Sequence record: MZ574432.2
Reading direction: 5' to 3' (one strand)
Length of the DNA: 64,000 nucleotides
Below the pieces are notes generated by a model. That model ran no database searches and was not told the DNA's origin. It saw only the letters and a list, made by a program, of their open reading frames with translations. Positions 16,956 to 30,025 of the stretch are shown piece by piece (the stretch's first letter is position 1; each line of letters starts with the position of its first letter). The position numbers were made by a program, and so were the translations under genes.

Positions 16956-17070
16956 GCGTAACTCTCCCTCAGGATCAGGACTGCGCCATCGACGCCAAAA
17001 CAGCGCCTGAGAAGGACGCTATGCCCGGCCCAAACCGGCGTCAACCGGCCAAAATGAAAAAATGACGCGT

Positions 17071-17105: not shown

Positions 17106-17156
17106 ATGGTTAATCCGTGAGCCTATCGTGCGGCTCCAGACTTCAGGAGTGCCGCT

Positions 17157-17968: not shown

Positions 17969-17979
17969 GGCCCACCGGT

Positions 17980-18054
17980 GCGGCTATAGCTCAGTGGTAG
18001 AGCGCCTGCTTGCCATGCAGGAGGTCGAGGGTTCGAGCCCCTCTAGCCGCTCCA
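17980..18054 (+). tRNA. tRNA-Gly(GCC)
   Basis: Cloverleaf GCGGCTA/TAGCCGC, anticodon stem cctgc/gcagg, loop ttGCCat, U73, CCA. Confidence 0.95.
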
Positions 18055-18076
18055 TTCTAAGCACAAGGACAAGACT

Positions 18077-18337
18077 ATGAAATCGCGCGACTTCTGTTAT
18101 TGGCTCCAGGGCCTGTTCGAACTGCAAAACCCCGTGGTGATCAACGAGACCCAGACCCGCCTGATCAAGGCGCATCTGAACATGGTCTTCACCCACGAGA
18201 TCGACCCCAGCTTCCCGGCCGCCCAGCAGGCGGCGTTGAACGCCGATCACGAGGCCGGCAAGAAGCCCGCGTCGAAGAACAACGGCTTCTTCGAGATTGT
18301 CGATTCGGGCCGCCAAGAAGGCCTCATGCGCTGCTGA
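18077..18337 (+). CDS. Conserved phage hypothetical protein, 86 aa
   Basis: AAGGA SD; recurrent phage N-terminus M..RDFCYWLQG.FEL. Confidence 0.7.
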   Translation: MKSRDFCYWLQGLFELQNPVVINETQTRLIKAHLNMVFTHEIDPSFPAAQQAALNADHEAGKKPASKNNGFFEIVDSGRQEGLMRC

Positions 18338-18367
18338 CGCGGCGCCCACTTCCCAGGACAATTCATC

Positions 18368-18658
18368 ATGCAGACCGTCGACCTTCTGGGCGACGCGCCA
18401 TTCTGCGCGCGTCCAGGCTACCATCTGCGCGACTTCCGCAAGGGCGTACTGGGCGAGGCCTCCAAGGTCCGTGAGGAGACCGAGGAGTTCCTGGACGCCG
18501 TCGAGCAAGGCTCGCTGATCATGGCGTTGGTGGAGCTTTCCGATCTCCACGGCGCCATCGAAGCCTATCTGGCCAAGCATGCGCCGGGCGTCACCATGGA
18601 CGATCTCGCCCAAATGTCCGCCATCACCAAAAGGGCCTTCCGTCATGGACGTCGCTAG
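18368..18658 (+). CDS. MazG-like nucleotide pyrophosphohydrolase fold, 96 aa
   Basis: K..EE..E...A........ELSDL all-alpha NTP-PPase pattern. Confidence 0.65.
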   Translation: MQTVDLLGDAPFCARPGYHLRDFRKGVLGEASKVREETEEFLDAVEQGSLIMALVELSDLHGAIEAYLAKHAPGVTMDDLAQMSAITKRAFRHGRR

Positions 18659-19223
18659 CTGGAAACGCCTTTCGCAGGCGATCGAGTTCTACACCGCGCG
18701 CGGCTACACCTATGTCGACGCGCCCTGGGCCGTACGCCGGCCGGTCATGGACATGACCTGCCCGCGCCCCGATCTAGCCAGTCCTCTGGGCGAGAAGTTC
18801 CTGGTCGGTTCGGCCGAGCAGTCCTTCCTGGACCTGGAGATCGACGTCCTGGGCAAGGGACGCTTCGTGGCCTTGACGCCGTGTTTCCGCGTCGCCGATG
18901 AAGGCCGCTCACCGCTGCATGACGGCTACTTCATGAAGGTCGAGCTTTACGCCAATCTCACCGAGAACCGAGGGCGTGTCCTCAATCGCATGATCGACGA
19001 CGCCATGACCTGTTTCCGATCCTTCGGGGCCGGTGACCTGGACGTCTACAACACCTTCGAGCAGGACGCCAAGCTGACCCGCGACATCGTCATGCGCGGC
19101 GTGGAGATCGGCTCCTATGGCATGCGCACGCGTCGCCATCCCGTGCTCGACGAGGACCACACCTGGGTCTACGGCACTGGCCTTGCCGAACCGCGCTTCT
19201 CGCGCGCCCTCCAGCGCCTCTGA
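18645..19223 (+). CDS. Stand-alone class II aminoacyl-tRNA synthetase-like catalytic core, 192 aa
   Basis: Motif 2-like LTPCFRVADE...LHDGYFMKVELY and motif 3-like VYGTGLAEPRF; no anticodon-binding domain; ATG 18645 overlaps the upstream gene. Confidence 0.7.
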   Translation: MDVASWKRLSQAIEFYTARGYTYVDAPWAVRRPVMDMTCPRPDLASPLGEKFLVGSAEQSFLDLEIDVLGKGRFVALTPCFRVADEGRSPLHDGYFMKVELYANLTENRGRVLNRMIDDAMTCFRSFGAGDLDVYNTFEQDAKLTRDIVMRGVEIGSYGMRTRRHPVLDEDHTWVYGTGLAEPRFSRALQRL

Positions 19224-19234
19224 TTAGGATTTCA

Positions 19235-19258
19235 CGACACGCTGTCGTAATCCTTGAC
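19235..19258 (+). promoter_or_regulatory. Motif promoter (copy 3) with palindrome CGACA-N3-TGTCG
   Basis: cgaca-cgc-tgtcg-taatc-cttgac; predicted start site coincides with ATG 19290. Confidence 0.7.
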
Positions 19259-19289
19259 AAGCACGAATTTCTGTGAGACACGTCGCCTT

Positions 19290-19355
19290 ATGACCTTCTC
19301 GATCTTCCTTTTCCGAGAGACCGGCTCGCCGAGCCGAGATACCAGCGCCTCCTAG
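19290..19355 (+). CDS. Putative leader peptide 1 (MTFSIFLFRETGSPSRDTSAS, 21 aa)
   Basis: Apparently leaderless ATG at the predicted start site; overlaps alternative hairpins just before tRNA-Glu. Confidence 0.45.
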   Translation: MTFSIFLFRETGSPSRDTSAS

Positions 19356-19383
19356 GCTGCTGGTACGACGGCTCGCGCTATGT

Positions 19384-19460
19384 GGGCCTGTCTTCTAAAT
19401 GGACTAGGAATCTCGGCTTTCAATCGAGCAATGCGGGTTCGAGCCCCGTCAGGCCTACCA
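19384..19460 (+). tRNA. tRNA-Glu(UUC)
   Basis: GGGCCTG/CAGGCCT acceptor, loop ctTTCaa, TTCGA T-loop, CCA. Confidence 0.9.
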
Positions 19461-19484
19461 ACATCACAATCGAAAGCCACCCTG

Positions 19485-19560
19485 GGCTCTAGGGTGTGAA
19501 GGTTAGCAGCGCCGGCTTGTCAGGCCGGAGGAAGGGGTTCGAGTCCCCTTAGAGTCGCCA
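19485..19560 (+). tRNA. tRNA-Asp(GUC)
   Basis: GGCTCTA/TAGAGTC acceptor, stem ccggc/gccgg, loop ttGTCag, G73, CCA. Confidence 0.9.
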
Positions 19561-19808
19561 TTTGCCCAAGCGGGCACATCCAATCGAAAGCGCCGGGCAA
19601 GAGACTTAGCGGTCTCCAAGCGCCTGGGTCGAGCCAAAAACGCAGGGGTCGTCGGGTCCGCAAGGACAGCCCTGGTCAGTGAGCGATGGCGGATAAGAAA
19701 TGGGTCCCAACCTGCTGAAGGTGGTTGGCGCCGCCGAGGGCGTTACCTCGGATTTCACGTGACGACACTGCCCCACTGGCTTTTGCCATGCGCGTCCGTT
19801 GCTCTAGG
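19561..19808 (+). ncRNA. Candidate structured ncRNA (~250-290 nt) co-transcribed with tRNA-Glu/Asp
   Basis: No credible ORF; many short hairpins (GCAA-capped gtcc/ggac, gagac/gtctc, ccgagg/cctcgg), long-range gtcgtc/gacgac pairing, ends at a terminator. Confidence 0.5.
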
Positions 19809-19809
19809 A

Positions 19810-19848
19810 CCCCAGGACAGGCTAGCCCTCTCCTGGGGTTTCCTTTTT
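19810..19848 (+). terminator. Intrinsic terminator
   Basis: ccccagga...tcctgggg stem followed by tttcc-ttttt. Confidence 0.75.
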
Positions 19849-19888
19849 GTGGGACCCAAGAAATTTTTCACGGATTCGTGCATCGTTT

Positions 19889-19923
19889 CTTGACATCCTC
19901 TTGAGCCTGTGTCATAGGCTCAA
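19889..19923 (+). promoter_or_regulatory. Promoter of the large tRNA operon (CTTGACA; degenerate motif) overlapped by inverted repeat ttgagcct/aggctcaa
   Basis: TTGACA at 19890-19895 directly after a terminator; inverted repeat 19901-19923 covers the -10 region. Confidence 0.6.
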
Positions 19924-19969
19924 TCCTCAACAGCCCAGATCGGGCTTTCACTCCGCCGGAACAAGGTCC

Positions 19970-20089
19970 ATGACCCGCATCCATACCACGCTGACGACCG
20001 CCAAGCCCGCCTCCACCGGCGCGCTTACGCTCGCCTCGTGGCCGGCGTCGAGCAAGCCGCTATTGCGGCACTCAGCGGTTCTCGCCTAA
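19970..20089 (+). CDS. Putative leader peptide 2 (MTRIHTTLTTAKPASTGALTLASWPASSKPLLRHSAVLA, 39 aa)
   Basis: AAGG SD; 33/39 residues are amino acids of the 12 downstream tRNAs; end of ORF forms one arm of a long hairpin. Confidence 0.65.
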   Translation: MTRIHTTLTTAKPASTGALTLASWPASSKPLLRHSAVLA

Positions 20090-20214
20090 CAGGCGACCGC
20101 TCCGGGTGCCGCTTCTAAGCCGCACCCGATCTCTCCTCCGACACATCTTCCCAAAACGTCGTAGCTGAACCGGGTGCTCCTGATCTCTCAGGAGATCGCC
20201 ATCTATTTCAGTTT

Positions 20215-20290
20215 CGGTGTGTAGCTCAGTTGGTAGAGCACGGGGTTTGGGACCTCGGGGTCGGAGGTTCGAGCCCTCTTGCACCGACCA
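20215..20290 (+). tRNA. tRNA-Pro(UGG)
   Basis: CGGTGTG/TGCACCG acceptor, loop ttTGGga, CCA. Confidence 0.9.
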
Positions 20291-20360
20291 ATTCGCCCTC
20301 CGCCGGCCTTAGGCCGGACCGCGATCGCTTGAGCGTCGGCGGAGGCGTGTTCTTTGTCGT

Positions 20361-20439
20361 GCCGGTATAGCTCAGTCTGGTAGTCAGCGACTGCCTCGTA
20401 AGCAGTAGGTCCGGGGTTCGAATCCTCGTGCCGGCACCA
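20361..20439 (+). tRNA. tRNA-Thr(CGU)
   Basis: GCCGGTA/TGCCGGC, stem actgc/gcagt, loop ctCGTaa, CCA. Confidence 0.9.
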
Positions 20440-20483
20440 CCAAGAACACGATCAACAGAAGGATCAACAAGACACAGACTTTC

Positions 20484-20570
20484 GGGCGAGTAGCCGAGTG
20501 GTTAAAGGCACCTGACTCTTAATCAGGCGTGAGAAATCCTACGTGGGTTCGAATCCCACCTCGCCCTCCA
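20484..20570 (+). tRNA. tRNA-Lys(CUU) with atypical long variable arm
   Basis: GGGCGAG/CTCGCCC, stem cctga/tcagg, loop ctCTTaa, 15-nt variable region, U73, CCA; 87 nt. Confidence 0.85.
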
Positions 20571-20657
20571 TCGATAAAGACTTCCATGTTCCCGTACGGG
20601 AACATTTCGGCCAGGACAAGGGTCCTGGGATGGAAATGTTCCCGATCGGGATCACGG

Positions 20658-20744
20658 GCGGGTGTGGCGAAGTTGGTAGCCGCGCGAGTCTCAGGTACTC
20701 GTGGTCGAAAGGCCGGGGAGGTTCGAATCCTCTCACCCGCACCA
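20658..20744 (+). tRNA. tRNA-Leu(CAG)
   Basis: GCGGGTG/CACCCGC, stem cgagt/actcg, loop ctCAGgt, long variable arm, A73, CCA. Confidence 0.92.
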
Positions 20745-20756
20745 ACACTCCTCTGG

Positions 20757-20843
20757 GCGGCGCTGGCGGAATGGTAGACGCGCCGGCTTCAAGTCCCGTG
20801 TGTCCGTAAGGATGTCCGAGTTCGAATCTCGGGCGCCGCACCA
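20757..20843 (+). tRNA. tRNA-Leu(CAA), weak anticodon stem
   Basis: GCGGCGC/GCGCCGC, Leu-type D arm and variable arm, loop ttCAAgt; stem ccggc/cccgt has two mismatches. Confidence 0.75.
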
Positions 20844-20886
20844 AGACGAGGGTTGGCGATGGAAAGCGAAGGTCAAAGCGAGACGT

Positions 20887-20973
20887 GCGGAAGTGGCGTA
20901 ACGGTAGCCGCGCCAGACTGAGTATCTGGTGATCTAAAGGGTCGTGGAGGTTCGAGTCCTCTCTTCCGCACCA
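20887..20973 (+). tRNA. tRNA-Leu(GAG)
   Basis: GCGGAAG/CTTCCGC, stem ccaga/tctgg, loop ctGAGta, long variable arm, CCA. Confidence 0.92.
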
Positions 20974-21008
20974 AACACAAGGAGAGGTAAGAGACAGATT
21001 TGGTTTGT

Positions 21009-21080
21009 GCTGAAATGGCCTAGCGGTAAAGGCGCTGCATTGTGGATGCAGACACGATGGTTCGAATCCATCTTTCAGTG
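21009..21080 (+). tRNA. tRNA-His(GUG), no encoded CCA, no G-1
   Basis: GCTGAAA/TTTCAGT, stem ctgca/tgcag, loop ttGTGga; abuts tRNA-Ala with a 1-nt spacer. Confidence 0.85.
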
Positions 21081-21081
21081 C

Positions 21082-21157
21082 GGGGATATAGCTCAGTTGG
21101 TAGAGCAGTTGCTTTGCAAGCATCAGGTCGTCGGTTCGAGCCCGACTATCTCCACCA
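21082..21157 (+). tRNA. tRNA-Ala(UGC)
   Basis: GGGGATA/TATCTCC with G3:U70, loop ttTGCaa, CCA. Confidence 0.92.
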
Positions 21158-21222
21158 GACCAGGGGACCCAGGCTGCGGCGCCGGATCGGCGACCACCTG
21201 GGTCCGTGACAACAAGAAAACT

Positions 21223-21316
21223 GGAGGGCTGGCAGAGCCTGGGTTAATGCACCCGTTTCGAAAACGGGCAGGGGCTGAAAGGTCCCTCGGGGGTTCAAAT
21301 CCCTCGCCCTCCGCCA
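21223..21316 (+). tRNA. tRNA-Ser(CGA)
   Basis: GGAGGGC/GCCCTCC, stem cccgt/acggg, loop ttCGAaa, long variable arm, G73, CCA. Confidence 0.92.
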
Positions 21317-21335
21317 ACACCAAGCCGGCATCTTT

Positions 21336-21427
21336 GGAAGGATGGCTGAGCCGGCTGAAAGCACCCGCCTGGAAAGTGGGTCGACCTCACAAGGGTCGCG
21401 GGGGTTCGAATCCCTCTCCTTCCGCCA
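21336..21427 (+). tRNA. tRNA-Ser(GGA)
   Basis: GGAAGGA/TCCTTCC, loop ctGGAaa, long variable arm, G73, CCA. Confidence 0.92.
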
Positions 21428-21462
21428 GATACCGAGCCGGCGCGGATCGCCGGCCGAAGCTA

Positions 21463-21552
21463 GGTGGGTTGACCGAGTGGTAAGGTGCGCGGTTGCTAAC
21501 CGCAGGTCAGCCTGGAAGGGCTGCGGGGGTTCGATCCCCTCACCCACCGCCA
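21463..21552 (+). tRNA. tRNA-Ser(GCU)
   Basis: GGTGGGT/ACCCACC, loop ttGCTaa, long variable arm, G73, CCA. Confidence 0.92.
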
Positions 21553-21567
21553 TAGCTTCGACGATGC

Positions 21568-21644
21568 AGGGGTGTAGCTCAACTGGCTAGAGCGTCGGTC
21601 TCCAAAACCGAAGGTTGCGGGTTCGAGTCCCGCCGCCCCTGCCA
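21568..21644 (+). tRNA. tRNA-Trp(CCA)
   Basis: AGGGGTG/CGCCCCT, stem tcggt/accga, loop ctCCAaa, G73, CCA. Confidence 0.92.
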
Positions 21645-21666
21645 ACATTTTCCGCGATTCAGGACC

Positions 21667-21945
21667 ATGACCAAGAAAGGAGGACCCCTGATGAAACCCG
21701 CACCCACTATGACCCAATGCCGCTTGACGCGCGGTGACCAGGGCGTCCAAGTCTCCTGGATTCCCAGCGAGTTCGCCCAGGTCGGCCGCATCGTCGATCT
21801 GAAGGAAAAGGACTACTGGTCCAACGGCTGGCGGGTCGACCAGACCTGGGGCACCATGGACGCCAGCGTGATCGCCGATCGCAGTCGAGATCACCTCAAC
21901 CACAGCAAGGCCACCGGCGATCGATGGCCCACCGCCCGCGCCTAG
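21667..21945 (+). CDS. Hypothetical protein, 92 aa (start could be 21691)
   Basis: AGGA and GGAGG SD sites; last ORF before a terminator. Confidence 0.7.
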   Translation: MTKKGGPLMKPAPTMTQCRLTRGDQGVQVSWIPSEFAQVGRIVDLKEKDYWSNGWRVDQTWGTMDASVIADRSRDHLNHSKATGDRWPTARA

Positions 21946-21948
21946 CGC

Positions 21949-21982
21949 AAAAAGGCCGCCCAGGTCTCCCTGGGCGGCCTTT
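21949..21982. terminator. Bidirectional terminator
   Basis: aaaaaggccgcccagg-tct-ccctgggcggccttt between convergent genes. Confidence 0.8.
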
Positions 21983-21988
21983 CACGTT

Positions 21989-22489
21989 CTAGGCGTGTGG
22001 TGGGAAGTCACCCGTCAGGACGCCCGCCGTGCGCGCGTAGCAGAACCAGTAGGAGCCGGTCCAGCGCAGCATGGCCACTTCGGGGACATGCACGGCCTCG
22101 ACAAGGCGTTGATAGCCTGTGCCATCGCCCTCAGTATCCGCTTTGCCGTCCATATCCACATCAGGCTGCGAGGCCTGGGGAACCTGTAAGGTCAGAGCCG
22201 CCGAAACATCGGAGAAGACGATGCGAGGGTTTGCGACCCCGTAGTGAGGACGTGCGAAGACGACAACCTGAGAGGAGCCAAAGGCCGTATTTGTCCTCGG
22301 ATAGAACTGAAGCTGAAGCTCATCGCCGACTTCCGTCGCCGGCATGAGCGAAGCGTAGAAGGACCCTTGAAACGGTTGATCGGGATCGACTTGCTTCGTG
22401 TAGATGTCGATGATGCCGACCTCGCCATTGGCGTTCAGGATTTCGGCGGCGGCCTCGTAGACCGTGTTGATGACGATGGTTCTGGACAT
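21989..22489 (-). CDS. Hypothetical protein, 166 aa (paralog 1 of a tandem pair)
   Basis: Shares HYGVANPRIVF, D.DGKAD.EGDG.GYQRL and LRWTGS.WFCYAR with 22510-22995. Confidence 0.8.
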   Translation of the reverse strand: MSRTIVINTVYEAAAEILNANGEVGIIDIYTKQVDPDQPFQGSFYASLMPATEVGDELQLQFYPRTNTAFGSSQVVVFARPHYGVANPRIVFSDVSAALTLQVPQASQPDVDMDGKADTEGDGTGYQRLVEAVHVPEVAMLRWTGSYWFCYARTAGVLTGDFPPHA

Positions 22490-22509
22490 GTGTCTGGTTA
22501 CCCTAGGCT

Positions 22510-22995
22510 TTAGAGTGAGAGGCTGTCAGTGGTCATCATGCCGAGCGAGCGGGCATAACAGAACCAGAACGAGCCCGTCCACCGAAGGAGTGCAACGAGA
22601 GGGACGCCGGGGGCTTCGCCCAAGCGCTGGTAGCCAGGACCATCACCCTCGACGTCAGCCTTGCCGTCGAAGTCCAGGTCTTTCTGCTCTATCGCACCCG
22701 CGTACAGAGCCATAGCATCTGTGATGTTCGGCGCACGATCAGCGAAAACGATCCTCGGGTTGGCCACACCATAGTGCGGCAAGGCGAAGATCAGCACGGT
22801 AGCGAAGCTACCCTTGCTGGCGGGGAAGACCTGAACCTGGAGGTCGTCTCCGACCTCTCGACCGGGAGCGAGGGCGGCGTAGAGAAAGCCACCACCGATT
22901 TCAGGAATGATGTTGATCACCCCTTTGAGGCCGTTGGGATTTATCGGCTCAGCTAATTGCCGTTCGGTGGCGCGCACCAGCACGTTCATCGCCAT
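22510..22995 (-). CDS. Hypothetical protein, 161 aa (paralog 2)
   Basis: ATG at 22995 with AAGGA SD; homology to paralog 1 begins here, so the listed 23265 start is too long. Confidence 0.8.
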   Translation of the reverse strand: MAMNVLVRATERQLAEPINPNGLKGVINIIPEIGGGFLYAALAPGREVGDDLQVQVFPASKGSFATVLIFALPHYGVANPRIVFADRAPNITDAMALYAGAIEQKDLDFDGKADVEGDGPGYQRLGEAPGVPLVALLRWTGSFWFCYARSLGMMTTDSLSL

Positions 22996-23115
22996 CGGGA
23001 GTCTATCCTTAGGAAGGCCGGCCCAGCGCCGGCAAAGCTCCCTACCCGATCTAGGAACACCGATCGACCCAAGATCGCAAACTATCCACAGCAACTTTTG
23101 CGACAGTCTAACGAC

Positions 23116-23143
23116 AAAAAGAAAGGCTCCCGAAGGAGCCTTC
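23116..23143 (-). terminator. Terminator for the minus-strand gene 23504-23148
   Basis: Minus strand ggaaggctcc-TTCG-ggagcctttc-ttttt. Confidence 0.7.
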
Positions 23144-23147
23144 CAAA

Positions 23148-23504
23148 TCACGCCATCGCTGCGTTGCGTTTCCCGCGCTGCTTTTCCAACGCGGCCTCCA
23201 TCGACTGCCAAACGAGCCGAGGCCGCCACGGCTCCTCGTTGTAAGGCGTGTCCAGGTAGCACCACCCCTCGCTAGGGGTCGCCAGGATCGGAAGACCTTC
23301 GAAGTCTTCGTCCTGCTGCTCCTCGGGGGTCAAACGCCGCGTCGACCAACGCAACCCGCCGCTCGGCAGCTTGGCGAATTCCAGGCCGCTAGGATCGCGG
23401 TCCTCGTCGAGGATGTCGAAGAGTTCGATGAGGTCCTGGGCATTGACCAGGAAGGCCTCGGTCTGTTCGTCGGGATTGATCGCCCGCACGAGATAGAGCG
23501 CCAT
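23148..23504 (-). CDS. Hypothetical acidic protein, 118 aa
   Basis: ATG 23504 with AAAGGAG SD (MALYLVRAINPDEQTEAFLV...). Confidence 0.75.
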   Translation of the reverse strand: MALYLVRAINPDEQTEAFLVNAQDLIELFDILDEDRDPSGLEFAKLPSGGLRWSTRRLTPEEQQDEDFEGLPILATPSEGWCYLDTPYNEEPWRPRLVWQSMEAALEKQRGKRNAAMA

Positions 23505-23591
23505 GGGTGTCTCCTTTATTGGCAAAGCCAAGGTGGGAGACAAGGACCGGGTTGTCCAGGCACTATAGTGCTGAAAAGATGTCCAGACACG

Positions 23592-23618
23592 AAAAAGGAC
23601 TCCCGAAGGAGCCCCTTG
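23592..23618 (-). terminator. Terminator closing the minus-strand non-coding unit
   Basis: Minus strand ggggctcc-TTCG-ggagtcc-ttttt. Confidence 0.75.
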
Positions 23619-23629
23619 CGTAGGGTTCA

Positions 23630-24462
23630 AAGGCTTGAGACACTAGGGCCTTCACGACGAGACCTCAGGGATTATCCTTGTTCAGGTTCCCCTGGGTGTC
23701 CAGGAGCCTTTCGGCTTCTCTGTCCCGCCAACGACGGTCATTTTAGGTCCACCACAGACCGTCCTGATGTACTACTCAGCCTCTCCACTACCATCAAAGG
23801 CTGGCCGGCCCTCAAAGGAAGCTTCCTGACACTCGTTACGACACCTTGCGAGGTCCCGCAACGTCCCTGCTAAGCCGAAGCCCAGGGAACGTAGTCGTCT
23901 ATTGCACACCAGCGGCCAGACTTTCGCTTTTGCTTCGTCAGCCAAATGATGATTGGAGGTTGGTTTACGCCCCCAGCTTGCCTTCCCTAGTGACGACGTG
24001 CTGTCCAGAGCTTCGTGGCTTTTGGCCACAAAATACTCGACGCCGTCCTGATCCCTAGATGGGACCGATCTGATCCGATTTCCCCTCCAGGTGCTTTTCA
24101 CACCCAGCTTGGAACCCAGAACAAATTGGGTCTCGCCCTAAGCCGGTATCACTCCGACCTCGAACTGTCGCAGATAGCTGTCGCTGATCCGCCCCCTACA
24201 CCTGAATCCTCGTCCACTCGGTCGTTTTGAGTTGACATGTCCGGTGGTTCTCAGGCCACACCAGAGCGTCTCACGACGCCTTTCGAACACATCACGACCT
24301 CATCGACTATCCTCCACCCCCGCTTTTAACGGGCTATGAAGGACGGGCTGGTTAGACCCGGTCTTCGATGCCTGCTTGAGTGGTCCCGGTTGCCCAGGCG
24401 ACGAGGGGTAGGTCCCCCGCCCAGCCTCCGAGTTGCCCCGGCGGCCCCGCTCTCAAGCGATG
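23630..24462 (-). ncRNA. Candidate large structured ncRNA (~830 nt; size and context recall the GOLLD class)
   Basis: Promoter-to-terminator unit with no credible ORF; many GNRA/UUCG-capped hairpins on the minus strand; 5'/3' ends complementary (GCUUGAGA/UCUCAAGC). Confidence 0.65.
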
Positions 24463-24468
24463 ACTGGG

Positions 24469-24499
24469 TTGTAGACGGACGATTTCCGGCGGTCAACAG
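24469..24499 (-). promoter_or_regulatory. Minus-strand sigma70-type promoter (TTGACC-N16-CTACAA)
   Basis: Reverse complement of ttgtag-acggacgatttccggc-ggtcaa; back-to-back with the plus-strand motif promoter. Confidence 0.55.
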
Positions 24500-24534
24500 C
24501 CAAATCGCACTTTTTTCGAAAAAGTTTCGATCGG

Positions 24535-24558
24535 CGTCGCGATGACGCGTTTCTTGAC
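24535..24558 (+). promoter_or_regulatory. Motif promoter (copy 4) with palindrome CGTCG-N3-TGACG
   Basis: cgtcg-cga-tgacg-cgttt-cttgac. Confidence 0.7.
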
Positions 24559-24589
24559 CCGCCCTTCGCGATCAGGCAGAACCATCGGC

Positions 24590-24918
24590 GAGGGCGCCAC
24601 GCGTAGTGGAAGAATCCGTGATCCCGCCCAAGGCGACGCCGCGTATCGACCTACGGTCATGCGCAATAGGCCGACCCTAAGCCGCATCGCGTCGACTACC
24701 TGCATGCTCCAGGCACTGAGCAAATCCCGGTCCGGCGGACATCCCACGAAGCTGGTGGAGATAACCGGAGGTTACCGTTCCTGTGGAGCGGATGGAAGGA
24801 AGGGTCTCAGTCGAGCCCTGGTAGGCCGTCCAGCCAGTAGCGCTGCTGTCTGGGTCCGGGACCGCCCAATCGACGACTCGCGAAAAGAGCCCGGCTGGTT
24901 TCGCGGCTGGCCGGGCTC
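24590..24918 (+). ncRNA. Candidate structured RNA or long 5' leader (~330 nt)
   Basis: Follows a motif promoter; multi-helix junctions (cgacgc/gcgtcg, tcccggtcc/gggtccggga, agggtctc/gagccct); ends in hairpin gagcccggc/gccgggctc. Confidence 0.45.
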
Positions 24919-24927
24919 ACTAACCGC

Positions 24928-25263
24928 TTGAGAACCCTCATGATCGACAACACCTTCATCCAGGCCGACGGCCCGCTCTATCTGACGCTGGAAGCGGCCC
25001 TGGAGGCGCCCGGCGCGATCTACACCCACGTCAAGAAGGGCGGCATCTATCGCCGTATGGGTGAGGCCAAGTACGCCGGCGACGCGGCGGCCCAGACGCT
25101 GGAAGGCGTGATGATGGCCGTCTATGAGCACCTCTACCCATACGCGCACTCCTTCTTTGTGCGTCCTCAAAGTGAGTTTGTCGAGGTCGTGCGGACCCAG
25201 CATGGCGAGCACCGCCGTTTCGTCTTTCACACCAATGAGATACTGACCGTTCTCGACACTTGA
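24928..25263 (+). CDS. DUF1653-like protein, 111 aa
   Basis: Y.H.KKGG.Y.....A........MAVY..LY......FVRP.SEF...V......RF pattern. Confidence 0.7.
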   Translation: MRTLMIDNTFIQADGPLYLTLEAALEAPGAIYTHVKKGGIYRRMGEAKYAGDAAAQTLEGVMMAVYEHLYPYAHSFFVRPQSEFVEVVRTQHGEHRRFVFHTNEILTVLDT

Positions 25264-25300
25264 GGGTACGTGAGACCCCATACCGTGCCCTGCGGCATGG

Positions 25301-25316
25301 TGACGCAATCCTTGAC
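25301..25316 (+). promoter_or_regulatory. Motif promoter (copy 5)
   Basis: tgacg-caatc-cttgac upstream of the cadherin-repeat gene. Confidence 0.7.
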
Positions 25317-25365
25317 TTGGCCTACGATCTAGGGTAGAGACGAGACCCTCTCTCCCAAGGAAATC

Positions 25366-27090
25366 GTGATGCTCAAGCCGCAAGCCTCTTCGCGGCGCGC
25401 GCGCCTCGCGCCCGCGTCGATCCCCATCATTCCGGCTGACATCGCCCTGGTCGGCGCGGTCATCCCCGCCGGCAGTCCGGCCGGGACCCTGGTCGGCACG
25501 CTGAGCGCGCTACCGGCCGCCGGCGACTACGAGTTCACCCTACTCGACAGCGCGGGCGGGCGCTTTGCCATTCAGGGCTCGGCCCTGGTCGCGGGCGCCA
25601 CGCCTTCGGCCGGTGGGGAGAACCCGACGATTACCGTGCGCACCACGGCGGCGTTCTCGCGACTGACGTTCGACAAGACCTTCTCGATCGCTGTCCAGAC
25701 CGTCGTCGCCCCGATCACGCTGTCGCCGACCAATCCGACCGTCGCCGAGAACACTGCTGCCGGCGTGACGGTCGCGTCGATTTCCTCGCCCGGCGCGACC
25801 TTGAGCCTGACCGACAATGCCGGCGGCCGGTTCGCCATCAGCGGGACCAATCTGGTCACCGGCGCGACGGCGACCAACTATGAGGTGGCCACCAGCCACG
25901 ATGTGACCATCCGCGCCGAGTATAACGGCGATGTGACGACCAAGACCGTGACGGTCCAGGTCTCCAACGTCGTCGAGATCACCAATATCACCCTGGCCGC
26001 CAGCAGCATCCCCGAGAACTCGGCCGCCGGCGTGGTCGTCGGGCAACTGGCCTCGGTCCCGCCCGGTGCGGCCCTGACCCTGACCGACAGCGCCGGCAGC
26101 CGCTTTGCCATCGACGGCAGCAACCGTCTCGTGGCTGGCTCGGTCGCCACGGACTACGAGACCAACACCACACACGACGTCTCCGTGCGCGCCACCCAAG
26201 GCCCCGACGTCTACAACAAGACCTTCACCATCAGCGTCACCAACGTCAATGAACTGACCGACATCACCCTGTCGGCCAATTCGATCGCCGAGAACTCGGC
26301 CGCTGGCGTCGTGGTCGGCAACCTCGCCAGCGTGATCCCCGGCGCCTCGTTCGCTGTGACCGGCCAGACGCCGTCAGGGACCTACTTCACCGTCAACGGC
26401 TCCAACCAGCTTGTGACTGGGGCGACGGCGACCAACTTCGAAGTCAATGCCAGCCACTCGGTCACCGTCACCGCGACCAAGGGCACCGACACCTTCCAAA
26501 AGACCTTCACGATCAACGTCAGCAACCAGACCGAGATCACCGACATCAGCCTGAGCAACGCCAGTATCAACGAAGGTGTCGCCCAGGGCACCGCCGTCGG
26601 CACCCTGTCGTCGACCCCGACGGGCGCGACCTTCTCCTTGGCGCCAACCAACCCTGCGGGCACGCGCTTCCAGGTCTCGGGCACGACGCTGCAACAAGGC
26701 GCGACGCCGAACGATCGCGAAGCCACGCCGACCGTGACGGTGAAGATTCGCGGCACGCGCCAGAGCGAAACCTTCGACAAGGATTTCGTCATCACCATCA
26801 ACAACGTCGTCGAACTGACCGACTTCACGCTGTCGGGCCTGACGATCGACGAGAACGCCGTCCAGGGCACTCCGGTGGGGACGCTGTCGTCGACCCCGAC
26901 GGGCGCGACCTACACCCTGAACGACAATGCCGGCGGGCGCTTCCAGCTTGTCGCCGGCGCCATCCAGGCCGGCGCGGTGGCGACCGACTTCGATACCGCC
27001 ACCAGCCACGACATCATCGTCACAGCCTCCCGAGGCGGCGAGACGATGCAGAAGACCTTCACGATCACGGTCAACGACCTCGGCGACTAG
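25366..27090 (+). CDS. Cadherin-like repeat protein, 574 aa
   Basis: About six ~95-aa repeats (ITL...SI.EN.A.G..VG.L.S...GA...L.D.AG.RF.I.G..L..GA..T(N/D)YE....H.V.VRAT......KTFTI.V.NV.E). Confidence 0.85.
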   Translation: MMLKPQASSRRARLAPASIPIIPADIALVGAVIPAGSPAGTLVGTLSALPAAGDYEFTLLDSAGGRFAIQGSALVAGATPSAGGENPTITVRTTAAFSRLTFDKTFSIAVQTVVAPITLSPTNPTVAENTAAGVTVASISSPGATLSLTDNAGGRFAISGTNLVTGATATNYEVATSHDVTIRAEYNGDVTTKTVTVQVSNVVEITNITLAASSIPENSAAGVVVGQLASVPPGAALTLTDSAGSRFAIDGSNRLVAGSVATDYETNTTHDVSVRATQGPDVYNKTFTISVTNVNELTDITLSANSIAENSAAGVVVGNLASVIPGASFAVTGQTPSGTYFTVNGSNQLVTGATATNFEVNASHSVTVTATKGTDTFQKTFTINVSNQTEITDISLSNASINEGVAQGTAVGTLSSTPTGATFSLAPTNPAGTRFQVSGTTLQQGATPNDREATPTVTVKIRGTRQSETFDKDFVITINNVVELTDFTLSGLTIDENAVQGTPVGTLSSTPTGATYTLNDNAGGRFQLVAGAIQAGAVATDFDTATSHDIIVTASRGGETMQKTFTITVNDLGD

Positions 27091-27093
27091 CAG

Positions 27094-27119
27094 AAAGCCC
27101 GGCTCCGGCCGGGCTTTTT
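27094..27119 (+). terminator. Intrinsic terminator
   Basis: aaagcccggc-tccg-gccgggcttttt. Confidence 0.85.
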
Positions 27120-27194
27120 CGTTGACGGCGTCATTGCGCCGCTTATGGTGGCCTCACGGCGGAGAGATCGCGCCGTTCAGAAGGAGAAACCACC

Positions 27195-27728
27195 ATGACC
27201 ATGATCGTCAAGATCATGACGGGCCATGACCTGCCCGACGATTCCCCCTACAAGACCTTCACCCTGGTGTCCGAAGTCAAGAGCGCGACATTCCACACCC
27301 AGGAAGACAGTGAGGGCCGGCGCCACTCCTACATGCGCGCCTACATCGCTGATCCGGTCAAGACCGCCGAGGTCCCCGGTTTCAGCGAGCACGAAGTGGT
27401 CTATGACATCCCGCCCAACGTCAACGTCTACGTGATGAACGGCAACGGCAAGACCATCTCGTCCTGGACCGCGCCGCCCGTGGCCGAGGGAAAGTTCACC
27501 TTTTCCGCTTCGGCGCCGATCAAATTTGTCGACGTCAGCCGTGACACCCTCTACGGGCGCATGGAAGCCTACTGCAAATATCGGGCAAATGGGTTCACCG
27601 CGATCAAGGCTGCCCTGGCCAGCGGCTTTCCTGATCCGACCAAGGTGATCGACGCGCTGGAAGCCGACCCACTCCTCATCTCCAGGATCGAGGAACTTTC
27701 GGCCCAGGCGTCCACCTCGACGACCTAG
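27195..27728 (+). CDS. Hypothetical protein, 177 aa
   Basis: AAGGAG SD, phage-typical codon usage. Confidence 0.8.
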   Translation: MTMIVKIMTGHDLPDDSPYKTFTLVSEVKSATFHTQEDSEGRRHSYMRAYIADPVKTAEVPGFSEHEVVYDIPPNVNVYVMNGNGKTISSWTAPPVAEGKFTFSASAPIKFVDVSRDTLYGRMEAYCKYRANGFTAIKAALASGFPDPTKVIDALEADPLLISRIEELSAQASTSTT

Positions 27729-27754
27729 GCCGGACGGGCCTGTCGAAAAACACG

Positions 27755-27802
27755 CGTCACGATGTCGTATTTCTTGACAGGCCCAAAAGCCTCCTGTATA
27801 AG
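27755..27802 (+). promoter_or_regulatory. Motif promoter (copy 6), palindrome CGTCA-N3-TGTCG, TTGACA-N17-TATAAG
   Basis: Near-consensus -35 (27774-27779) and -10 (27797-27802); predicted start site at ATG 27810. Confidence 0.85.
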
Positions 27803-27809
27803 CCCCGTT

Positions 27810-27908
27810 ATGAGCAAGTCGTATCGCCAATTTGTGCGCCAGATTCAGTTCGTCCGAGTTAATCGGGCGGGCCGTTCGCGCATGGATGATGGTGGGACCC
27901 GAGTGTAG
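27810..27908 (+). CDS. Putative leader peptide 3 (MSKSYRQFVRQIQFVRVNRAGRSRMDDGGTRV, 32 aa)
   Basis: Leaderless ATG at the predicted start site; codons 5-18 are all readable by the 8 downstream tRNAs; contains an antiterminator strand. Confidence 0.7.
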   Translation: MSKSYRQFVRQIQFVRVNRAGRSRMDDGGTRV

Positions 27909-27937
27909 GGTCCAAAGACCTCTCAATCCATTTCTGC

Positions 27938-27980
27938 GAAGGCCCGCCCAGGTAACCCCTCGGCGGGCCTTCTGCGTTTT
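27938..27980 (+). terminator. Attenuator-like terminator upstream of tRNA cluster 2
   Basis: gaaggcccgcc...ggcgggccttc-tgcgtttt; the 5' arm can instead pair with 27865-27879 inside the leader ORF. Confidence 0.65.
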
Positions 27981-28036
27981 CACCCTTCGTTTTCATCCGG
28001 TAGCGAGCGAGATCATGACCGGAAACTAACCCCTTC

Positions 28037-28126
28037 GGGTCGGCAGGTGGGCACTGGCATGAGCCCAAGGGACTGTAACTCCCCCGTCGAAAGGCTGTGT
28101 AGGTTCGAGTCCTACCCGACCCACCA
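28037..28126 (+). tRNA. tRNA-Tyr(GUA), atypical acceptor/D-arm connector
   Basis: GGGTCGG/CCGACCC, loop ctGTAac, long variable arm, A73, CCA; 5 nt rather than 2 before the D stem. Confidence 0.75.
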
Positions 28127-28159
28127 TTCTTCCGTGGAGCCCGAGTAAACGGCCTCTGC

Positions 28160-28231
28160 GCTTCAGTAGCTCAGTGGTAGAGCGCCGTCTTGACATGGCG
28201 GAGGTCGAAGGTTCGAACCCTTCCTGAAGCA
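28160..28231 (+). tRNA. tRNA-Val(GAC), no encoded CCA
   Basis: GCTTCAG/CTGAAGC, loop ttGACat; 1-nt spacer to tRNA-Ile. Confidence 0.9.
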
Positions 28232-28232
28232 C

Positions 28233-28308
28233 GCTAGGTTAGCTCAGTTGGTAGAGCACCGGACCGATAATCCGGTTGTCACAGGTTCGAGCCCTGTACC
28301 TAGCACCA
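28233..28308 (+). tRNA. tRNA-Ile(GAU), C33
   Basis: GCTAGGT/ACCTAGC, stem ccgga/tccgg, loop ccGATaa, CCA. Confidence 0.88.
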
Positions 28309-28313
28309 AACAC

Positions 28314-28388
28314 TTATACGCTTTACCGTATAAAGTAAAAATATACGATCTAGCGTATAAAATGACTTGAACTTACCGAATTCGGTAA
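28314..28388. repeat. AT-rich cluster of three inverted repeats
   Basis: ttatacg-N6-cgtataa (28314-28333), tatacg-N6-cgtata (28342-28359), ttaccgaattcggtaa (28373-28388). Confidence 0.8.
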
Positions 28389-28423
28389 ATAAAAAGAGGT
28401 GAACAGAGGAAAGGACAAGTAAC

Positions 28424-28498
28424 GGGCCGGTAGCTCAGTGGTAGAGCGCTGCTGTCACATAGCAGATGTCGAGTGTTCGAGACACTCCCGGCCCACCA
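28424..28498 (+). tRNA. tRNA-Val(CAC)
   Basis: GGGCCGG/CCGGCCC, stem ctgct/agcag, loop gtCACat, CCA. Confidence 0.88.
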
Positions 28499-28505
28499 GT
28501 TCAGT

Positions 28506-28579
28506 TGAAGCATGGTGTAATGGTAGCACATCAGAGTTTGGTTCTGGGAGTCTAGGTTCGAGTCCTAGTGCTTCAGCCA
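28506..28579 (+). tRNA. tRNA-Gln(UUG)
   Basis: TGAAGCA/TGCTTCA, loop gtTTGgt, G73, CCA. Confidence 0.88.
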
Positions 28580-28633
28580 ACTGAAAGAGTTTCAGGTCTC
28601 ATGTGACGAGATCAGGAGAGAGAAGGCGAGTTT

Positions 28634-28708
28634 TTCCGAGTAGCTCAGCGGTAGAGCAGCGTGCTGTTAACACGACGGTCGGTGGTTCGATCCCACCCTC
28701 GGGAGCCA
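28634..28708 (+). tRNA. tRNA-Asn(GUU)
   Basis: TTCCGAG/CTCGGGA, loop ctGTTaa, G73, CCA. Confidence 0.92.
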
Positions 28709-28723
28709 TTACTTCTTCTCCAC

Positions 28724-28802
28724 GCCCGGTTAGCTCAGCGGAATTAAGAGCAGACGCCTACGAAGCGTAAGGTCGGGGGTTCGAATCCCTCACCGGGTGC
28801 CA
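28724..28802 (+). tRNA. tRNA-Arg(ACG)
   Basis: GCCCGGT/ACCGGGT, loop ctACGaa, CCA. Confidence 0.9.
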
Positions 28803-28831
28803 TTTTCACGTATGCAGTGCTTCGGCCCTGC

Positions 28832-28906
28832 GGGGATGTAGCTCAGTGGTAGAGCGGGAGACTGAAAATCTCCGCGTCGGTGGTTCGACCCCACCCTTCC
28901 CCACCA
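28832..28906 (+). tRNA. tRNA-Phe(GAA)
   Basis: GGGGATG/CTTCCCC (one U-U), stem ggaga/tctcc, loop ctGAAaa, CCA. Confidence 0.9.
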
Positions 28907-28926
28907 GTTCTCGGTGACCGCGAGGC

Positions 28927-28960
28927 GGCCGTCAGGATGTTCGATCCTGGCGGCCTTTTT
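28927..28960 (+). terminator. Intrinsic terminator of tRNA cluster 2
   Basis: ggccgtcaggat-gttcg-atcctggcggcc-ttttt. Confidence 0.85.
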
Positions 28961-29046
28961 CATGCCCGTGGTTCAGTGAACGTCGGCCTCTCGACATTGA
29001 GGCGAGTTCTGGATTAGGTAAAACGTCAGGATGTATTTACGACCCA

Positions 29047-29070
29047 CGTCACCGTGACGCAAATCTTGAC
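29047..29070 (+). promoter_or_regulatory. Motif promoter (copy 7) with palindrome CGTCA-N3-TGACG
   Basis: cgtca-ccg-tgacg-caaat-cttgac. Confidence 0.75.
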
Positions 29071-29208
29071 ATCTATCAGAGCTTCCCCTACCCTGCAAGC
29101 ACATTTTCAATGGCTCAAGTCGGGGACGAGAGCATGGCCCATGCCCATCAGCGTCCTCCCGAAGCGGCCTCGGAGGAAACCGAGCAAACGCCGCAAAGGA
29201 CAAATGCC

Positions 29209-29304
29209 ATGAAGACGCTCATTGAGCGCCTGCGAGCGGCCCACCTGGAGGCCGAAGCCGAGCGCGTTGCCCAGTACCTGTCCGCGCAAGCCTTGGAGGC
29301 CTAA
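29209..29304 (+). CDS. Small helical protein, 31 aa (MKTLIERLRAAHLEAEAERVAQYLSAQALEA)
   Basis: AAAGGA SD before ATG 29209, in frame with the listed 29110 ORF. Confidence 0.45.
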   Translation: MKTLIERLRAAHLEAEAERVAQYLSAQALEA

Positions 29305-29307
29305 GCT

Positions 29308-29652
29308 ATGACTTCCCAGGCCAACAATACCGCGCAGGCGCGTGAGCGTCACCTGCAAATCCAACTCTTCGAGACGATCAACGACAAGCTCGACAAGGTC
29401 GACGTCCGCTTCGACAAGGTCGAGGACCGCTTCGACAAGCTGTCGGACTCGATCACCGACGTCTCCACGCGCCTGACGCGCATCGAAGCCTCGGACGTGG
29501 CGTCCCGCGTCCAGAAGCTCGAAGACAGCCTTCACGAGAACGATCGCCGGATCACCAAGCTGGAGACGATCCTGCTGCCGGTGACGGGTCTGGGCTCGGC
29601 CCTGGCCGGCGCCCTCGCCACCTGGGTTTTCGGTTTGTTCCCGCATGCTTAA
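29308..29652 (+). CDS. Coiled-coil protein with C-terminal hydrophobic helix, 114 aa
   Basis: Heptad repeats (DKLDKVDVRFDKVEDRFDKL) and terminal LLPVTGLGSALAGALATWVFGLF. Confidence 0.75.
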   Translation: MTSQANNTAQARERHLQIQLFETINDKLDKVDVRFDKVEDRFDKLSDSITDVSTRLTRIEASDVASRVQKLEDSLHENDRRITKLETILLPVTGLGSALAGALATWVFGLFPHA

Positions 29653-29800
29653 GGTTTAACGGCTAAGCTTAGGCGACCTGAAGGTGCGTCAAACGACCTC
29701 AGGTTAATTTTTCATAAACACGCCTTCGCACCTCTTGTTCCTTCCGAAACAGTCGGTAGGGTCGATCCAACAAATCGATCCGGCGTTTTGAGGAGAGAAC

Positions 29801-30025
29801 ATGCTGGCCGCCGTTTCCGTTCCCGACCACCTGGAAAATTTTGATCTCCAGGAGGCGGTTGATCAGGCCCAAGGAAGCCTGATCGTGTCGTCCACCCAGC
29901 TTTCTGAACTGAGTGCGGAACCCCTGTCTGACACGGGTGTCGCGCGTCTGGTCAAGCTGGTCGCCCAGATCAATCACGATCTCTCGGCGACTGTCGAGGC
30001 CTGGAAAGCCAGTAATCCAGTGTAG
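29801..30025 (+). CDS. Hypothetical protein, 74 aa
   Basis: GAGGAG SD. Confidence 0.7.
   Translation: MLAAVSVPDHLENFDLQEAVDQAQGSLIVSSTQLSELSAEPLSDTGVARLVKLVAQINHDLSATVEAWKASNPV

Follow-up and report, generated by a model that had tools for sequence, protein, structure and literature searches.

In the ilvGMEDA and thr operons of enterobacteria, transcription is controlled through a promoter-proximal open reading frame (ORF) of about 20–32 codons, ilvL or thrL, whose regulatory codons specify Ile, Val and Leu or Thr and Ile. The leader RNA can form alternative 1:2, 2:3 and 3:4 helices, the last of which is an intrinsic terminator, and a ribosome stalled on segment 1 leads to read-through. In Escherichia coli, the pheST (pheM) leader controls Phe-tRNA synthetase according to the level of charged tRNA-Phe. 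Here we describe a probable leader of this kind in a 64,000-nucleotide stretch of sequence record MZ574432.2 (the window; 62000 is added to a window coordinate to obtain the record coordinate). Positions 27700–28160 are 100% identical to Caulobacter phage BL47 (Bertelyvirus, subfamily Dolichocephalovirinae). The element, which we term leader 1, consists of a 32-codon ORF (27810–27908) and a set of RNA hairpins, and lies ahead of an eight-gene tRNA operon on the same strand. It is probably a ribosome-mediated transcription attenuator that places the phage tRNA operon under feedback from the supply of the matching aminoacyl-tRNAs. This reading is based on the anatomy of the locus, its conservation, the covariation of three helices, a codon run that preserves its amino-acid set, a thermodynamic switch and an internal replicate at a second tRNA cluster.

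The multivalent leaders ilvL and thrL, which sense several amino acids, are the nearest precedents. They regulate biosynthetic enzymes, whereas the leader described here would regulate tRNA genes and sits in a phage. They rely on tandem repeats of codons for one or two amino acids, in contrast to the single, interspersed codons for seven amino acids (eight in the second leader) of the phage. In addition, the phage mRNA is apparently leaderless, and its ORF extends across segment 2, ending within the antiterminator's apical loop. The nearest conceptual precedent for sensing tRNA supply is pheST, whose output, as in the phage, is part of the translation apparatus; it responds to one amino acid, its output is a synthetase and the feedback is on charging, whereas in the phage the feedback would be on tRNA abundance. 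The four-segment logic is shared with trpL and hisL, which differ in their tandem codons for one amino acid and in their Shine-Dalgarno-dependent initiation. T-boxes also read tRNA status and choose between terminator and antiterminator upstream of genes of the translation apparatus, but they bind uncharged tRNA directly, through a specifier codon and the conserved T-box sequence, without translation and one tRNA each; the phage leader, unlike them, has the signatures of a translated ORF. Searches of Rfam at E ≤ 1 found no leader family (Trp, His, Thr, Leu, Phe), T-box or other family at 27774–27985, and no T-box or leader-family match within 17000–30000. The likeness to the amino-acid operon leaders of Rfam is one of mechanism, not of homology. 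In a full-text literature search, neither attenuation of tRNA genes nor these ORFs turned out to have been described. The phage leader would extend known ribosome-mediated attenuation to tRNA genes as the regulated output.

The GenBank record MZ574432.2 carries no annotation from the end of gp158 (27728) to tRNA-Val (28160). In this interval, direct reading of the plus strand, on which all features of the locus lie, identifies a promoter-like site (27774–27802) composed of TTGACA (27774–27779), a 17-nt spacer and TATAAG (27797–27802). Only 7 nt separate the end of the −10 hexamer from the ATG at 27810, the geometry of a leaderless mRNA, which would place the transcription start at or next to the A of the start codon. 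The ORF encodes MSKSYRQFVRQIQFVRVNRAGRSRMDDGGTRV and ends with TAG (27906–27908); it is nested in a longer listed ORF. The promoter, start codon and length of the ORF are as the first-pass annotation of this DNA had given them. Among the 18 TTGACA sites of the window, three have an ATG at the leaderless position, and two of those three directly precede tRNA clusters. In Caulobacter crescentus, 375 leaderless mRNAs are translated about as efficiently as leadered ones, and small leader coding sequences have been noted, for example upstream of trpS (PMC4117421). Leaderless mRNAs are thus common and efficiently translated in Caulobacter, which makes leaderless translation of the leader plausible.

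The leader ORF lies between the promoter-like site and tRNA-Tyr(GTA) (28037–28126), the first gene past the attenuator, which has no GenBank annotation. This tRNA is called by ARAGORN only at a relaxed threshold, with an acceptable cloverleaf and a long variable arm, and its match to the Rfam tRNA clan is weak (29.6 bits). The other seven genes of the eight that had been proposed, Val-GAC, Ile-GAT, Val-CAC, Gln-TTG, Asn-GTT, Arg-ACG and Phe-GAA (28160–28906), are found by ARAGORN and Rfam and are annotated in GenBank. An intrinsic terminator with a 12-bp stem followed by TTTTTC (28927–28960; 28927–28955 in the terminator scan) closes the operon. In relatives, Tyr is first in the cluster in Bertelyviruses, including CcrSC and CcrBL9, in Colossus and in the Brevundimonas phages (relaxed ARAGORN); in phiCbK-like phages, a GTA anticodon stem-loop follows the terminator at this position, as read by eye only. 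After the Tyr position, the relatives' clusters contain Phe, Val, Ile, Val, Gln, usually Asn, and Arg. According to the 2012 genome paper on phiCbK, Rfam detected tRNAs as the sole RNA elements, and a Tyr tRNA is missing from every phage of the group (PMC3556154).

Codons 5–18 of the leader (27822–27863) encode Y R Q F V R Q I Q F V R V N. Under standard wobble rules, and assuming that A34 of Arg-ACG is converted to inosine, all 14 codons are readable by the eight downstream tRNAs, as the first-pass annotation had proposed; the run would therefore report on the product being regulated. In all six frames of the window it is the longest run readable by the cluster, the runner-up being an Arg repeat of nine codons. 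The readable set comprises 23% of all triplets, and the expected number of 14-codon readable runs is 1.2e-4 for independent, identically distributed codons. At the amino-acid level, only 2 of 95,956 stop-free 14-codon windows reach 14/14. All 14 residues belong to the amino-acid set of the leader's own cluster and none to that of the other tRNA cluster of the window. Rare synonyms ending in A or T account for 7 of the 14 codons, compared with 15% in the same codon families of the long ORFs of the phage (p = 0.002). The usage of these rare codons in BL47 is 6% for ATT, 6% for GTT, 7% for CGA and 10% for TTT. ATT is invariant across the 14 phages compared below, although ATC accounts for 94% of Ile codons.

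The RNA of the leader can be divided into four segments. Segment 1 (27834–27858), the anti-antiterminator strand, was identified by RNAalifold and pair counts and coincides with codons 9–17; its core GTTCGTCCGAG (27848–27858) pairs with TCGGGCGGGC, and GTGC pairs with GCGC in the outer part of the 1:2 helix. Segment 2 (27862–27887) comprises ATCGGGCGGGCCGTTCGCGC and ATGGAT and can pair with either segment 1 or segment 3. A small hairpin, GGACCC-GAGTGTA-GGGTCC (27895–27913), forms the apical part of the 2:3 structure and holds the stop codon of BL47 in its loop or abutting it. Segment 3 (27926–27952), ATCCAT…GCGAAGGCCCGCCCAGG, takes part in both folds, as the 3′ strand in the antiterminator and as the 5′ arm in the terminator, and segment 4 with the U-tract (CCTCGGCGGGCC and TTCTGCGTTTTC; 27958–27981) provides the terminator 3′ arm. 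The complementarity of gggcgggcc-g-ttcgc (27865–27879) to gcgaa-ggcccgccc (27936–27949), on which the first-pass annotation had built its antiterminator, is borne out by direct reading. That annotation had recognized segments 2, 3 and 4 but overlooked segment 1; folding and RNAalifold show a full four-segment attenuator. The terminator it had placed at 27938–27972 is present as a G+C-rich stem, in which GGCCCGCC (27941–27948) pairs with GGCGGGCC (27962–27969), followed by TTCTGCGTTTTC; the uridine tract, which it had described as following the hairpin, is interrupted in BL47. Across phages the 3:4 stem is G+C-rich and 8–11 bp long, 11 of the 14 have the canonical U-tract CTTTTCTTTT, and in CcrColossus, Karma and Swift the homologous site is annotated in GenBank as a rho-independent terminator.

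All three mutually exclusive helices are supported by covariation among the 14 phages. The RNAalifold consensus recovers 1:2 together with 3:4, for which 97.1% of the alignment cells are paired, with six compensatory pairs, against 27–51% paired in slid controls. The 3:4 helix alone is 99% paired with three compensatory pairs. In the 1:2 helix, alignment columns 39–49/53–63 contain three compensatory pairs and columns 25–28/69–72 are 100% paired. The 9-bp core of the 2:3 helix is 100% paired with two compensatory pairs, and the whole 14-pair helix is 86.7% paired (slid controls for the whole helix, 35–58%). The outer 2:3 helix scores low because the MAFFT alignment is unreliable between the stop-codon hairpin and segment 3, and covariation in this region was judged by folding each sequence individually. 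When segment 4 is removed, every lineage folds into one long 2:3 hairpin tipped by the stop-codon hairpin, which is kept in 14/14 phages with at least five different stem sequences. The substitutions in CcrSC and CcrBL9 link the segments: where segment 2 has changed from G to A, segment 3 has a matching C-to-T and segment 4 a matching G-to-A substitution, and a U·G pair with segment 1 has become U-A. Such a change in four places is predicted by an attenuator. The Magneto group has CTCG/CGAG in place of TTCG/CGAA, a compensation between segments 2 and 3 read from the alignment. The covariation in helices 2:3 and 3:4 that had been put forward as a check of the first-pass annotation is thus observed.

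Taken together, the locus suggests the following mechanism. Host RNA polymerase would start at or next to the A of the ATG at 27810, and a 70S ribosome would load on the leaderless 5′ AUG and trail the polymerase. The first half of the ORF presents Tyr, Arg, Gln, Phe, Val, Ile and Asn codons, many of them rare and A/T-ending, which the downstream tRNAs could read; the same codons double as the predicted RNA segment 1, the partner of segment 2. If decoding is fast, the ribosome would cross segment 2 and reach the stop codon in the apical loop of the would-be antiterminator. Helix 1:2 would then re-form behind the ribosome, the 3:4 helix (27941–27969 and the U-tract) would form, and transcription would end before tRNA-Tyr. 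If a central codon is slow, the stalled ribosome would mask segment 1, segments 2 and 3 would pair, the terminator would be blocked and the polymerase would enter the tRNA genes. The build-up of phage tRNAs would relieve the stall, and the operon would switch itself off. The stop codon sets this scheme apart from trpL, in which it lies between segments 1 and 2 so that the terminating ribosome covers segment 2. In the phage leader, the ORF spans segment 2, and its stop lies in the apical loop of the 2:3 structure, not right after the codon run. Segment 2 is therefore left behind the ribosome, and re-formation of 1:2 together with a ribosome wedged in the apical loop must substitute. From this arrangement we infer the start site, that the ORF is translated, in which direction it regulates in vivo and what triggers it; the trigger would presumably be starvation, tRNA decay or anticodon nucleases.

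The switch was modeled by forcing a 28-nt ribosome footprint to be unpaired and calculating equilibrium pair probabilities on RNA long enough to form the terminator. In Magneto, Colossus, Papperlapapp and Rogue, the naked RNA is predicted to form the terminator (P ≥ 0.98). A ribosome with its A site at codons ~10–14 (4–13 in Colossus and 2–15 in BL47) gives the antiterminator, and from about codon 15–17 to near the stop the terminator is predicted again. In the equilibrium model, the position of the regulatory codons is thus such that a ribosome stalled there covers segment 1 and keeps clear of segment 2. Most codons within the sensitive window specify Gln, Ile, Gln, Phe/Val, Val and Arg. Termination of the untranslated leader, as in trpL and hisL, is likewise predicted for the phiCbK-like, Colossus and Brevundimonas versions. 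For BL47, the model gives 0.59 terminator for naked RNA, antiterminator at codons 2–15 and terminator at codons 16–31.

The element was found by blastn of a phage collection in 45 records, all of them Caulobacter or Brevundimonas phages of the Dolichocephalovirinae, and the conserved block consists of the ORF plus the hairpins, to the exclusion of the flanking DNA. We compared 14 distinct versions from at least five genera or lineages: BL47, CcrSC and CcrBL9 (Bertelyvirus); phiCbK, Magneto, Karma and Swift (Shapirovirus), with which we grouped BL57, whose leader is near-identical and whose record names no genus; Rogue and BL10 (Poindextervirus); one Colossusvirus; and three Brevundimonas phages. 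In all 14, TTGAC[AC] is followed by 17–18 nt, a variable hexamer, exactly 7 nt and the ATG, while the spacer and −10 sequences are divergent. The ORF is 31–32 codons long in every phage, and the two independent indels within the run are each exactly 3 nt. The stop codon is TAG, TAA or TGA depending on the phage, and its position in or at the hairpin loop is fixed (14/14).

The peptide itself evolves in an unusual manner. The run reads YRQFVRQIQFVRVN in BL47, YRQFVRQIQVVRNI in Magneto, YRQFVQIQVVRNF in Rogue, YRNNVRQIRVRQFN in Colossus and YRNNVQQIQVVRFN in Papperlapapp. Nine of its 14 positions vary, often by radical changes (F/N, V/R, N/I), and the order of residues is scrambled. Even so, 11 of the 12 alternative residues are members of {Y,R,Q,N,F,V,I}, which for a background of 29% has a binomial p of 1.1e-5. 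In the second half of the peptide (RAGRSRMDDGGTRV), replacements lead to residues that the set lacks (L, T, H, C, A, E), and base pairing is kept. A first half that preserves its amino-acid set and a second half that preserves pairing are what one would expect of a regulatory leader, not of a functional peptide. Next to segment 2 lies an Arg codon, which is CGA in the phages with Arg-ACG in their clusters (Bertelyviruses and Colossus) and CGG in those with Arg-CCG and no Arg-ACG (phiCbK-like and Brevundimonas phages); the change is compensated within helix 1:2. The correspondence between this codon and the anticodon is partial and may reflect only one or two evolutionary events. The expectation that leader codons and cluster anticodons vary together in relatives therefore holds for the amino-acid set and for the CGA/CGG shift, and is borne out imperfectly outside Bertelyvirus, as the CGY and AAT codons considered below show. 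Frame +2 was also considered as the conserved frame and rejected; most of the phages have it open, but it is interrupted in those of Brevundimonas, and no start codon is conserved.

Leader 1 has a counterpart at the other tRNA cluster of the window. The Pro-Thr-Lys-Leu-Leu-Leu-His-Ala-Ser-Ser-Ser-Trp tRNA cluster (20215–21644) is preceded, at a distance of 125 nt, by a 39-residue ORF, MTRIHTTLTTAKPASTGALTLASWPASSKPLLRHSAVLA (19970–20089), which is annotated as hypothetical protein gp151. Of the 38 residues that follow Met in this ORF, 33 are in {P,T,K,L,H,A,S,W} and four in the leader 1 set. In BL47 this composition alone is only moderately unusual, with 57 of 65,778 windows reaching 33/38, because off-frame G+C-rich sequence is rich in S, T, P and A. 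The ORF at this position is MFALSHNSLSTKAASPASLSLAPLATATKPSTKPTTSASHSTDHL in phiCbK-like phages (41/44 in the set) and MTFSTHKPSTLKPATGAASLAHASLLTPATSKPSLSRSL in Colossus (35/38). Using the leader 2 region as a blastn query, we found no similarity outside Bertelyvirus except for the tRNA-Pro gene, and the peptides differ throughout. The weight of leader 2 thus rests on the independent phiCbK and Colossus versions with their shared composition. Trp occurs in leader 2 only in Bertelyvirus, the sole lineage with tRNA-Trp in that cluster; in Colossus, tRNA-Trp is in a separate Trp-Gly-Gly cluster, and it is absent from the cluster of phiCbK-like phages. The phiCbK-type leader 2, which is PHROG 12742 (unknown function), is followed by a canonical terminator directly before tRNA-Pro, and in a minimum free energy model of the phiCbK and Rogue versions this terminator forms only with a ribosome near the 3′ end of the ORF. 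Judged by sequence, leader 2 is an independent replicate of the leader 1 principle, with complementary composition in three lineages.

Several observations weigh against an attenuator that senses the matching tRNAs. The BL47 U-tract (TTCTGCGTTTTC) is interrupted, and a simple terminator scan does not call the site. At equilibrium, BL47 is ambiguous without a ribosome (0.59 terminator) and CcrSC favors the antiterminator; moreover, a mask at the stop codon returns both to the antiterminator. The Bertelyvirus switch must therefore rely on co-transcriptional kinetics and steric exclusion; the mask model represents neither kinetics nor a ribosome in the apical loop physically separating the arms. 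The predicted sensitive window spans only about five codons in most lineages, and by the same model the Tyr codon (codon 5) and the last codons (16–18, Val/Asn) may not be sensors. Because pairing with segment 2 also constrains part of the run, composition and structure cannot be fully separated. CcrBL9 has the one run residue outside the set, encoded by a Ser codon. Leaders of the phiCbK-like and Brevundimonas phages retain CGY codons not readable by the Arg tRNAs that these phages carry (CCT, CCG, TCT), and the phiCbK-like phages retain one AAT codon without a convincing Asn tRNA. An internal promoter within 28309–28423 could free the last five tRNAs from control. Finally, host tRNAs and amino-acid starvation would likewise act on the attenuator, which would thus not be specific to phage tRNA levels.

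Some of these points would be accommodated if the leader reported only that a ribosome follows the polymerase, and with it the overall capacity for translation, the identity of its codons being a by-product of pairing with segment 2 and of ancestry. Such a general sensor of translation coupling agrees with a segment 1 core (GTCGTCCGG) set by complementarity to segment 2, with the few codons in the predicted sensitive window and with the leader codons unmatched by phage tRNAs in several lineages. However, pairing with a G+C-rich segment 2 leaves the conserved rare TAT, CAA, TTT and ATT codons unexplained, as it does the confinement of radical replacements to the cluster's amino-acid set and the complementary second leader at the other cluster; we consider this explanation unlikely. 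It is highly improbable that the ORF is an ordinary small protein gene with its own terminator, the tRNAs being transcribed by read-through or from other promoters without regulation. Its frame and length are conserved, its homologues in Brevundimonas phages are annotated as hypothetical proteins, and the second leader is an annotated coding sequence that forms a PHROG. Yet the first half of the peptide keeps its composition through scrambled order and radical replacements and the second half tracks RNA pairing, the leader 1 peptide matches no Pfam or PHROG family, a gene plus terminator has no need of three mutually exclusive covarying helices, and the stop codon is in a hairpin loop across all lineages. 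The strong conservation of the RNA structure could also point to a switch that works without translation, through direct binding (of a ligand, of a protein or, as in a T-box, of a tRNA), or to a trans-acting terminated RNA of ~170 nt, with the ORF incidental in either case. A terminated attenuator RNA, rnTrpL of the alphaproteobacterium Sinorhizobium, is reported to act in trans (PMC7968998). The Rfam search, T-box included, speaks against a switch of this kind, and an incidental ORF would not be expected to show a fixed leaderless ATG, 3-nt indels, a fixed stop position with varying stop codons and set-preserving replacements. A trans-acting role of the terminated RNA would add to the function of an attenuator, not replace it, and as a substitute for attenuation these possibilities have very little probability. 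Ribosome-mediated attenuation remains the explanation that we favor, and the comparative checks put forward in the first-pass annotation all speak for it.

We lean slightly towards a broader reading, in which the tRNA genes of the Dolichocephalovirinae form separate demand-sensing regulons, each with a multiplexed leader matched to its own anticodons. Leader 1 would cover Tyr/Phe/Val/Ile/Gln/Asn/Arg and leader 2 Pro/Thr/Lys/Leu/His/Ala/Ser(/Trp), and a small leaderless ORF before tRNA-Glu/Asp may be a third such leader. If this is true, these would be the first tRNA genes found to be controlled by leader-peptide attenuation, with more multiplexing than in any attenuator known so far. The phage would gauge the shortfall in host decoding for each codon family, whether it arises from a mismatch in codon usage, from turnover of host tRNAs during infection or from tRNA-cleaving defense systems, and top up only those tRNAs. 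Why large phages carry tRNA genes, and under which conditions these are needed, is debated; they may compensate for codon usage, replace host tRNAs that have been degraded or help to evade anticodon nucleases. Sensor codons that mirror the tRNAs they control would imply a direct measurement of decoding capacity and tRNA expression on demand, and the leader would be a natural read-out of the codons that limit during infection. Textbook attenuation would gain a tRNA-gene output, multiplexing over 7–8 amino acids and a leaderless format that couples the first ribosome to the polymerase. For annotation, the analysis adds a conserved regulatory ORF that had been left unannotated and recovers missed Tyr, Glu and Asp tRNA genes; gp151 (BL47), phiCbK_235, Magneto gp080 and other "hypothetical proteins" would be reinterpreted as leader peptides. 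The element may also serve as a compact natural template for synthetic sensors of tRNA supply.

The third small ORF, within 19254–19355, encodes MTFSIFLFRETGSPSRDTSAS. It shares the leaderless geometry of leader 1 (TTGACA, N17, GACACG, N7, ATG at 19290) and lies 28 nt upstream of tRNA-Glu/tRNA-Asp. Its CGA-GAG and CGA-GAT codon pairs are kept in CcrSC and Colossus, and its stop codon is in the loop of a covarying hairpin (ACCAGC/GCTGGT versus ACCACC/GGTGGT). It contains one Glu and one Asp codon only, so that the match to the tRNAs is not significant alone, and no terminator is evident. The two downstream genes, tRNA-Glu(TTC) and tRNA-Asp(GTC) (19384–19560), are, like tRNA-Tyr(GTA) (28037–28126), unannotated in the BL47 GenBank record.

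Exact-pattern scans place the element only in sequenced Dolichocephalovirinae, although diverged versions would escape such scans. A pattern scan of IMG/VR with GGCGGGCCNTTCGNNCNTGG returned 19 loci, of which only BL10, Rogue and Colossus are real and the others are chance matches; segment-2…segment-3 patterns gave 3 hits in JGI metagenomes and 7 in GTDB genomes, all chance matches inside genes.

Within the tRNA operon, from tRNA-Ile to tRNA-Val(CAC), lies the sole AT-rich island of the window (28309–28423; GC 32–38% versus 64.5% overall). It contains three palindromes, TATACG-N6-CGTATA twice and TACCGAATTCGGTA, whose stems are conserved and whose loops vary in CcrSC and CcrBL9. In lineages outside Bertelyvirus, a spacer of 34–45 nt takes its place. 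The island could contain operators, processing hairpins or an internal promoter (TTGAAC-N17-TAAAAA). At the tRNA-Asn(GTT) site of the phiCbK-like phages (L006–L012, about 2895–3042), ARAGORN calls a poorly folded AAT 'Ile' tRNA with mismatched acceptor and anticodon stems, which may be a decaying Asn tRNA.

Between the terminator and tRNA-Tyr (27990–28029), a small hairpin with a Shine-Dalgarno-like loop (GATC…GGAGATC) is followed by a mini-ORF of 4–5 codons, with homologous sites in L004, L005, L006, L009 and L012. The mini-ORF reads MNNGG* in Colossus, Rogue, BL10 and BL57, MTGGD* in Papperlapapp and MTGN* (28015–28029) in BL47, and is absent from the Magneto/phiCbK group. On the other side of the leader, right after the gp158 stop codon, a small hairpin, AGGCC-GGACG-GGCCT (27729–27745), precedes an A-rich stretch and shows covariation in the CcrSC and CcrBL9 sequences. 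Its role may be to terminate transcription of the opposite strand or, as a structure at a transcript end, to insulate the leader promoter. In a 1.4-kb gap without GenBank annotation, which lies between the two tRNA clusters and extends from gp155c to gp156, the minus strand at 23631–24048 matches the full model of the GOLLD RNA (RF02032) with 104 bits and E = 4.6e-27, the gathering score being 150.

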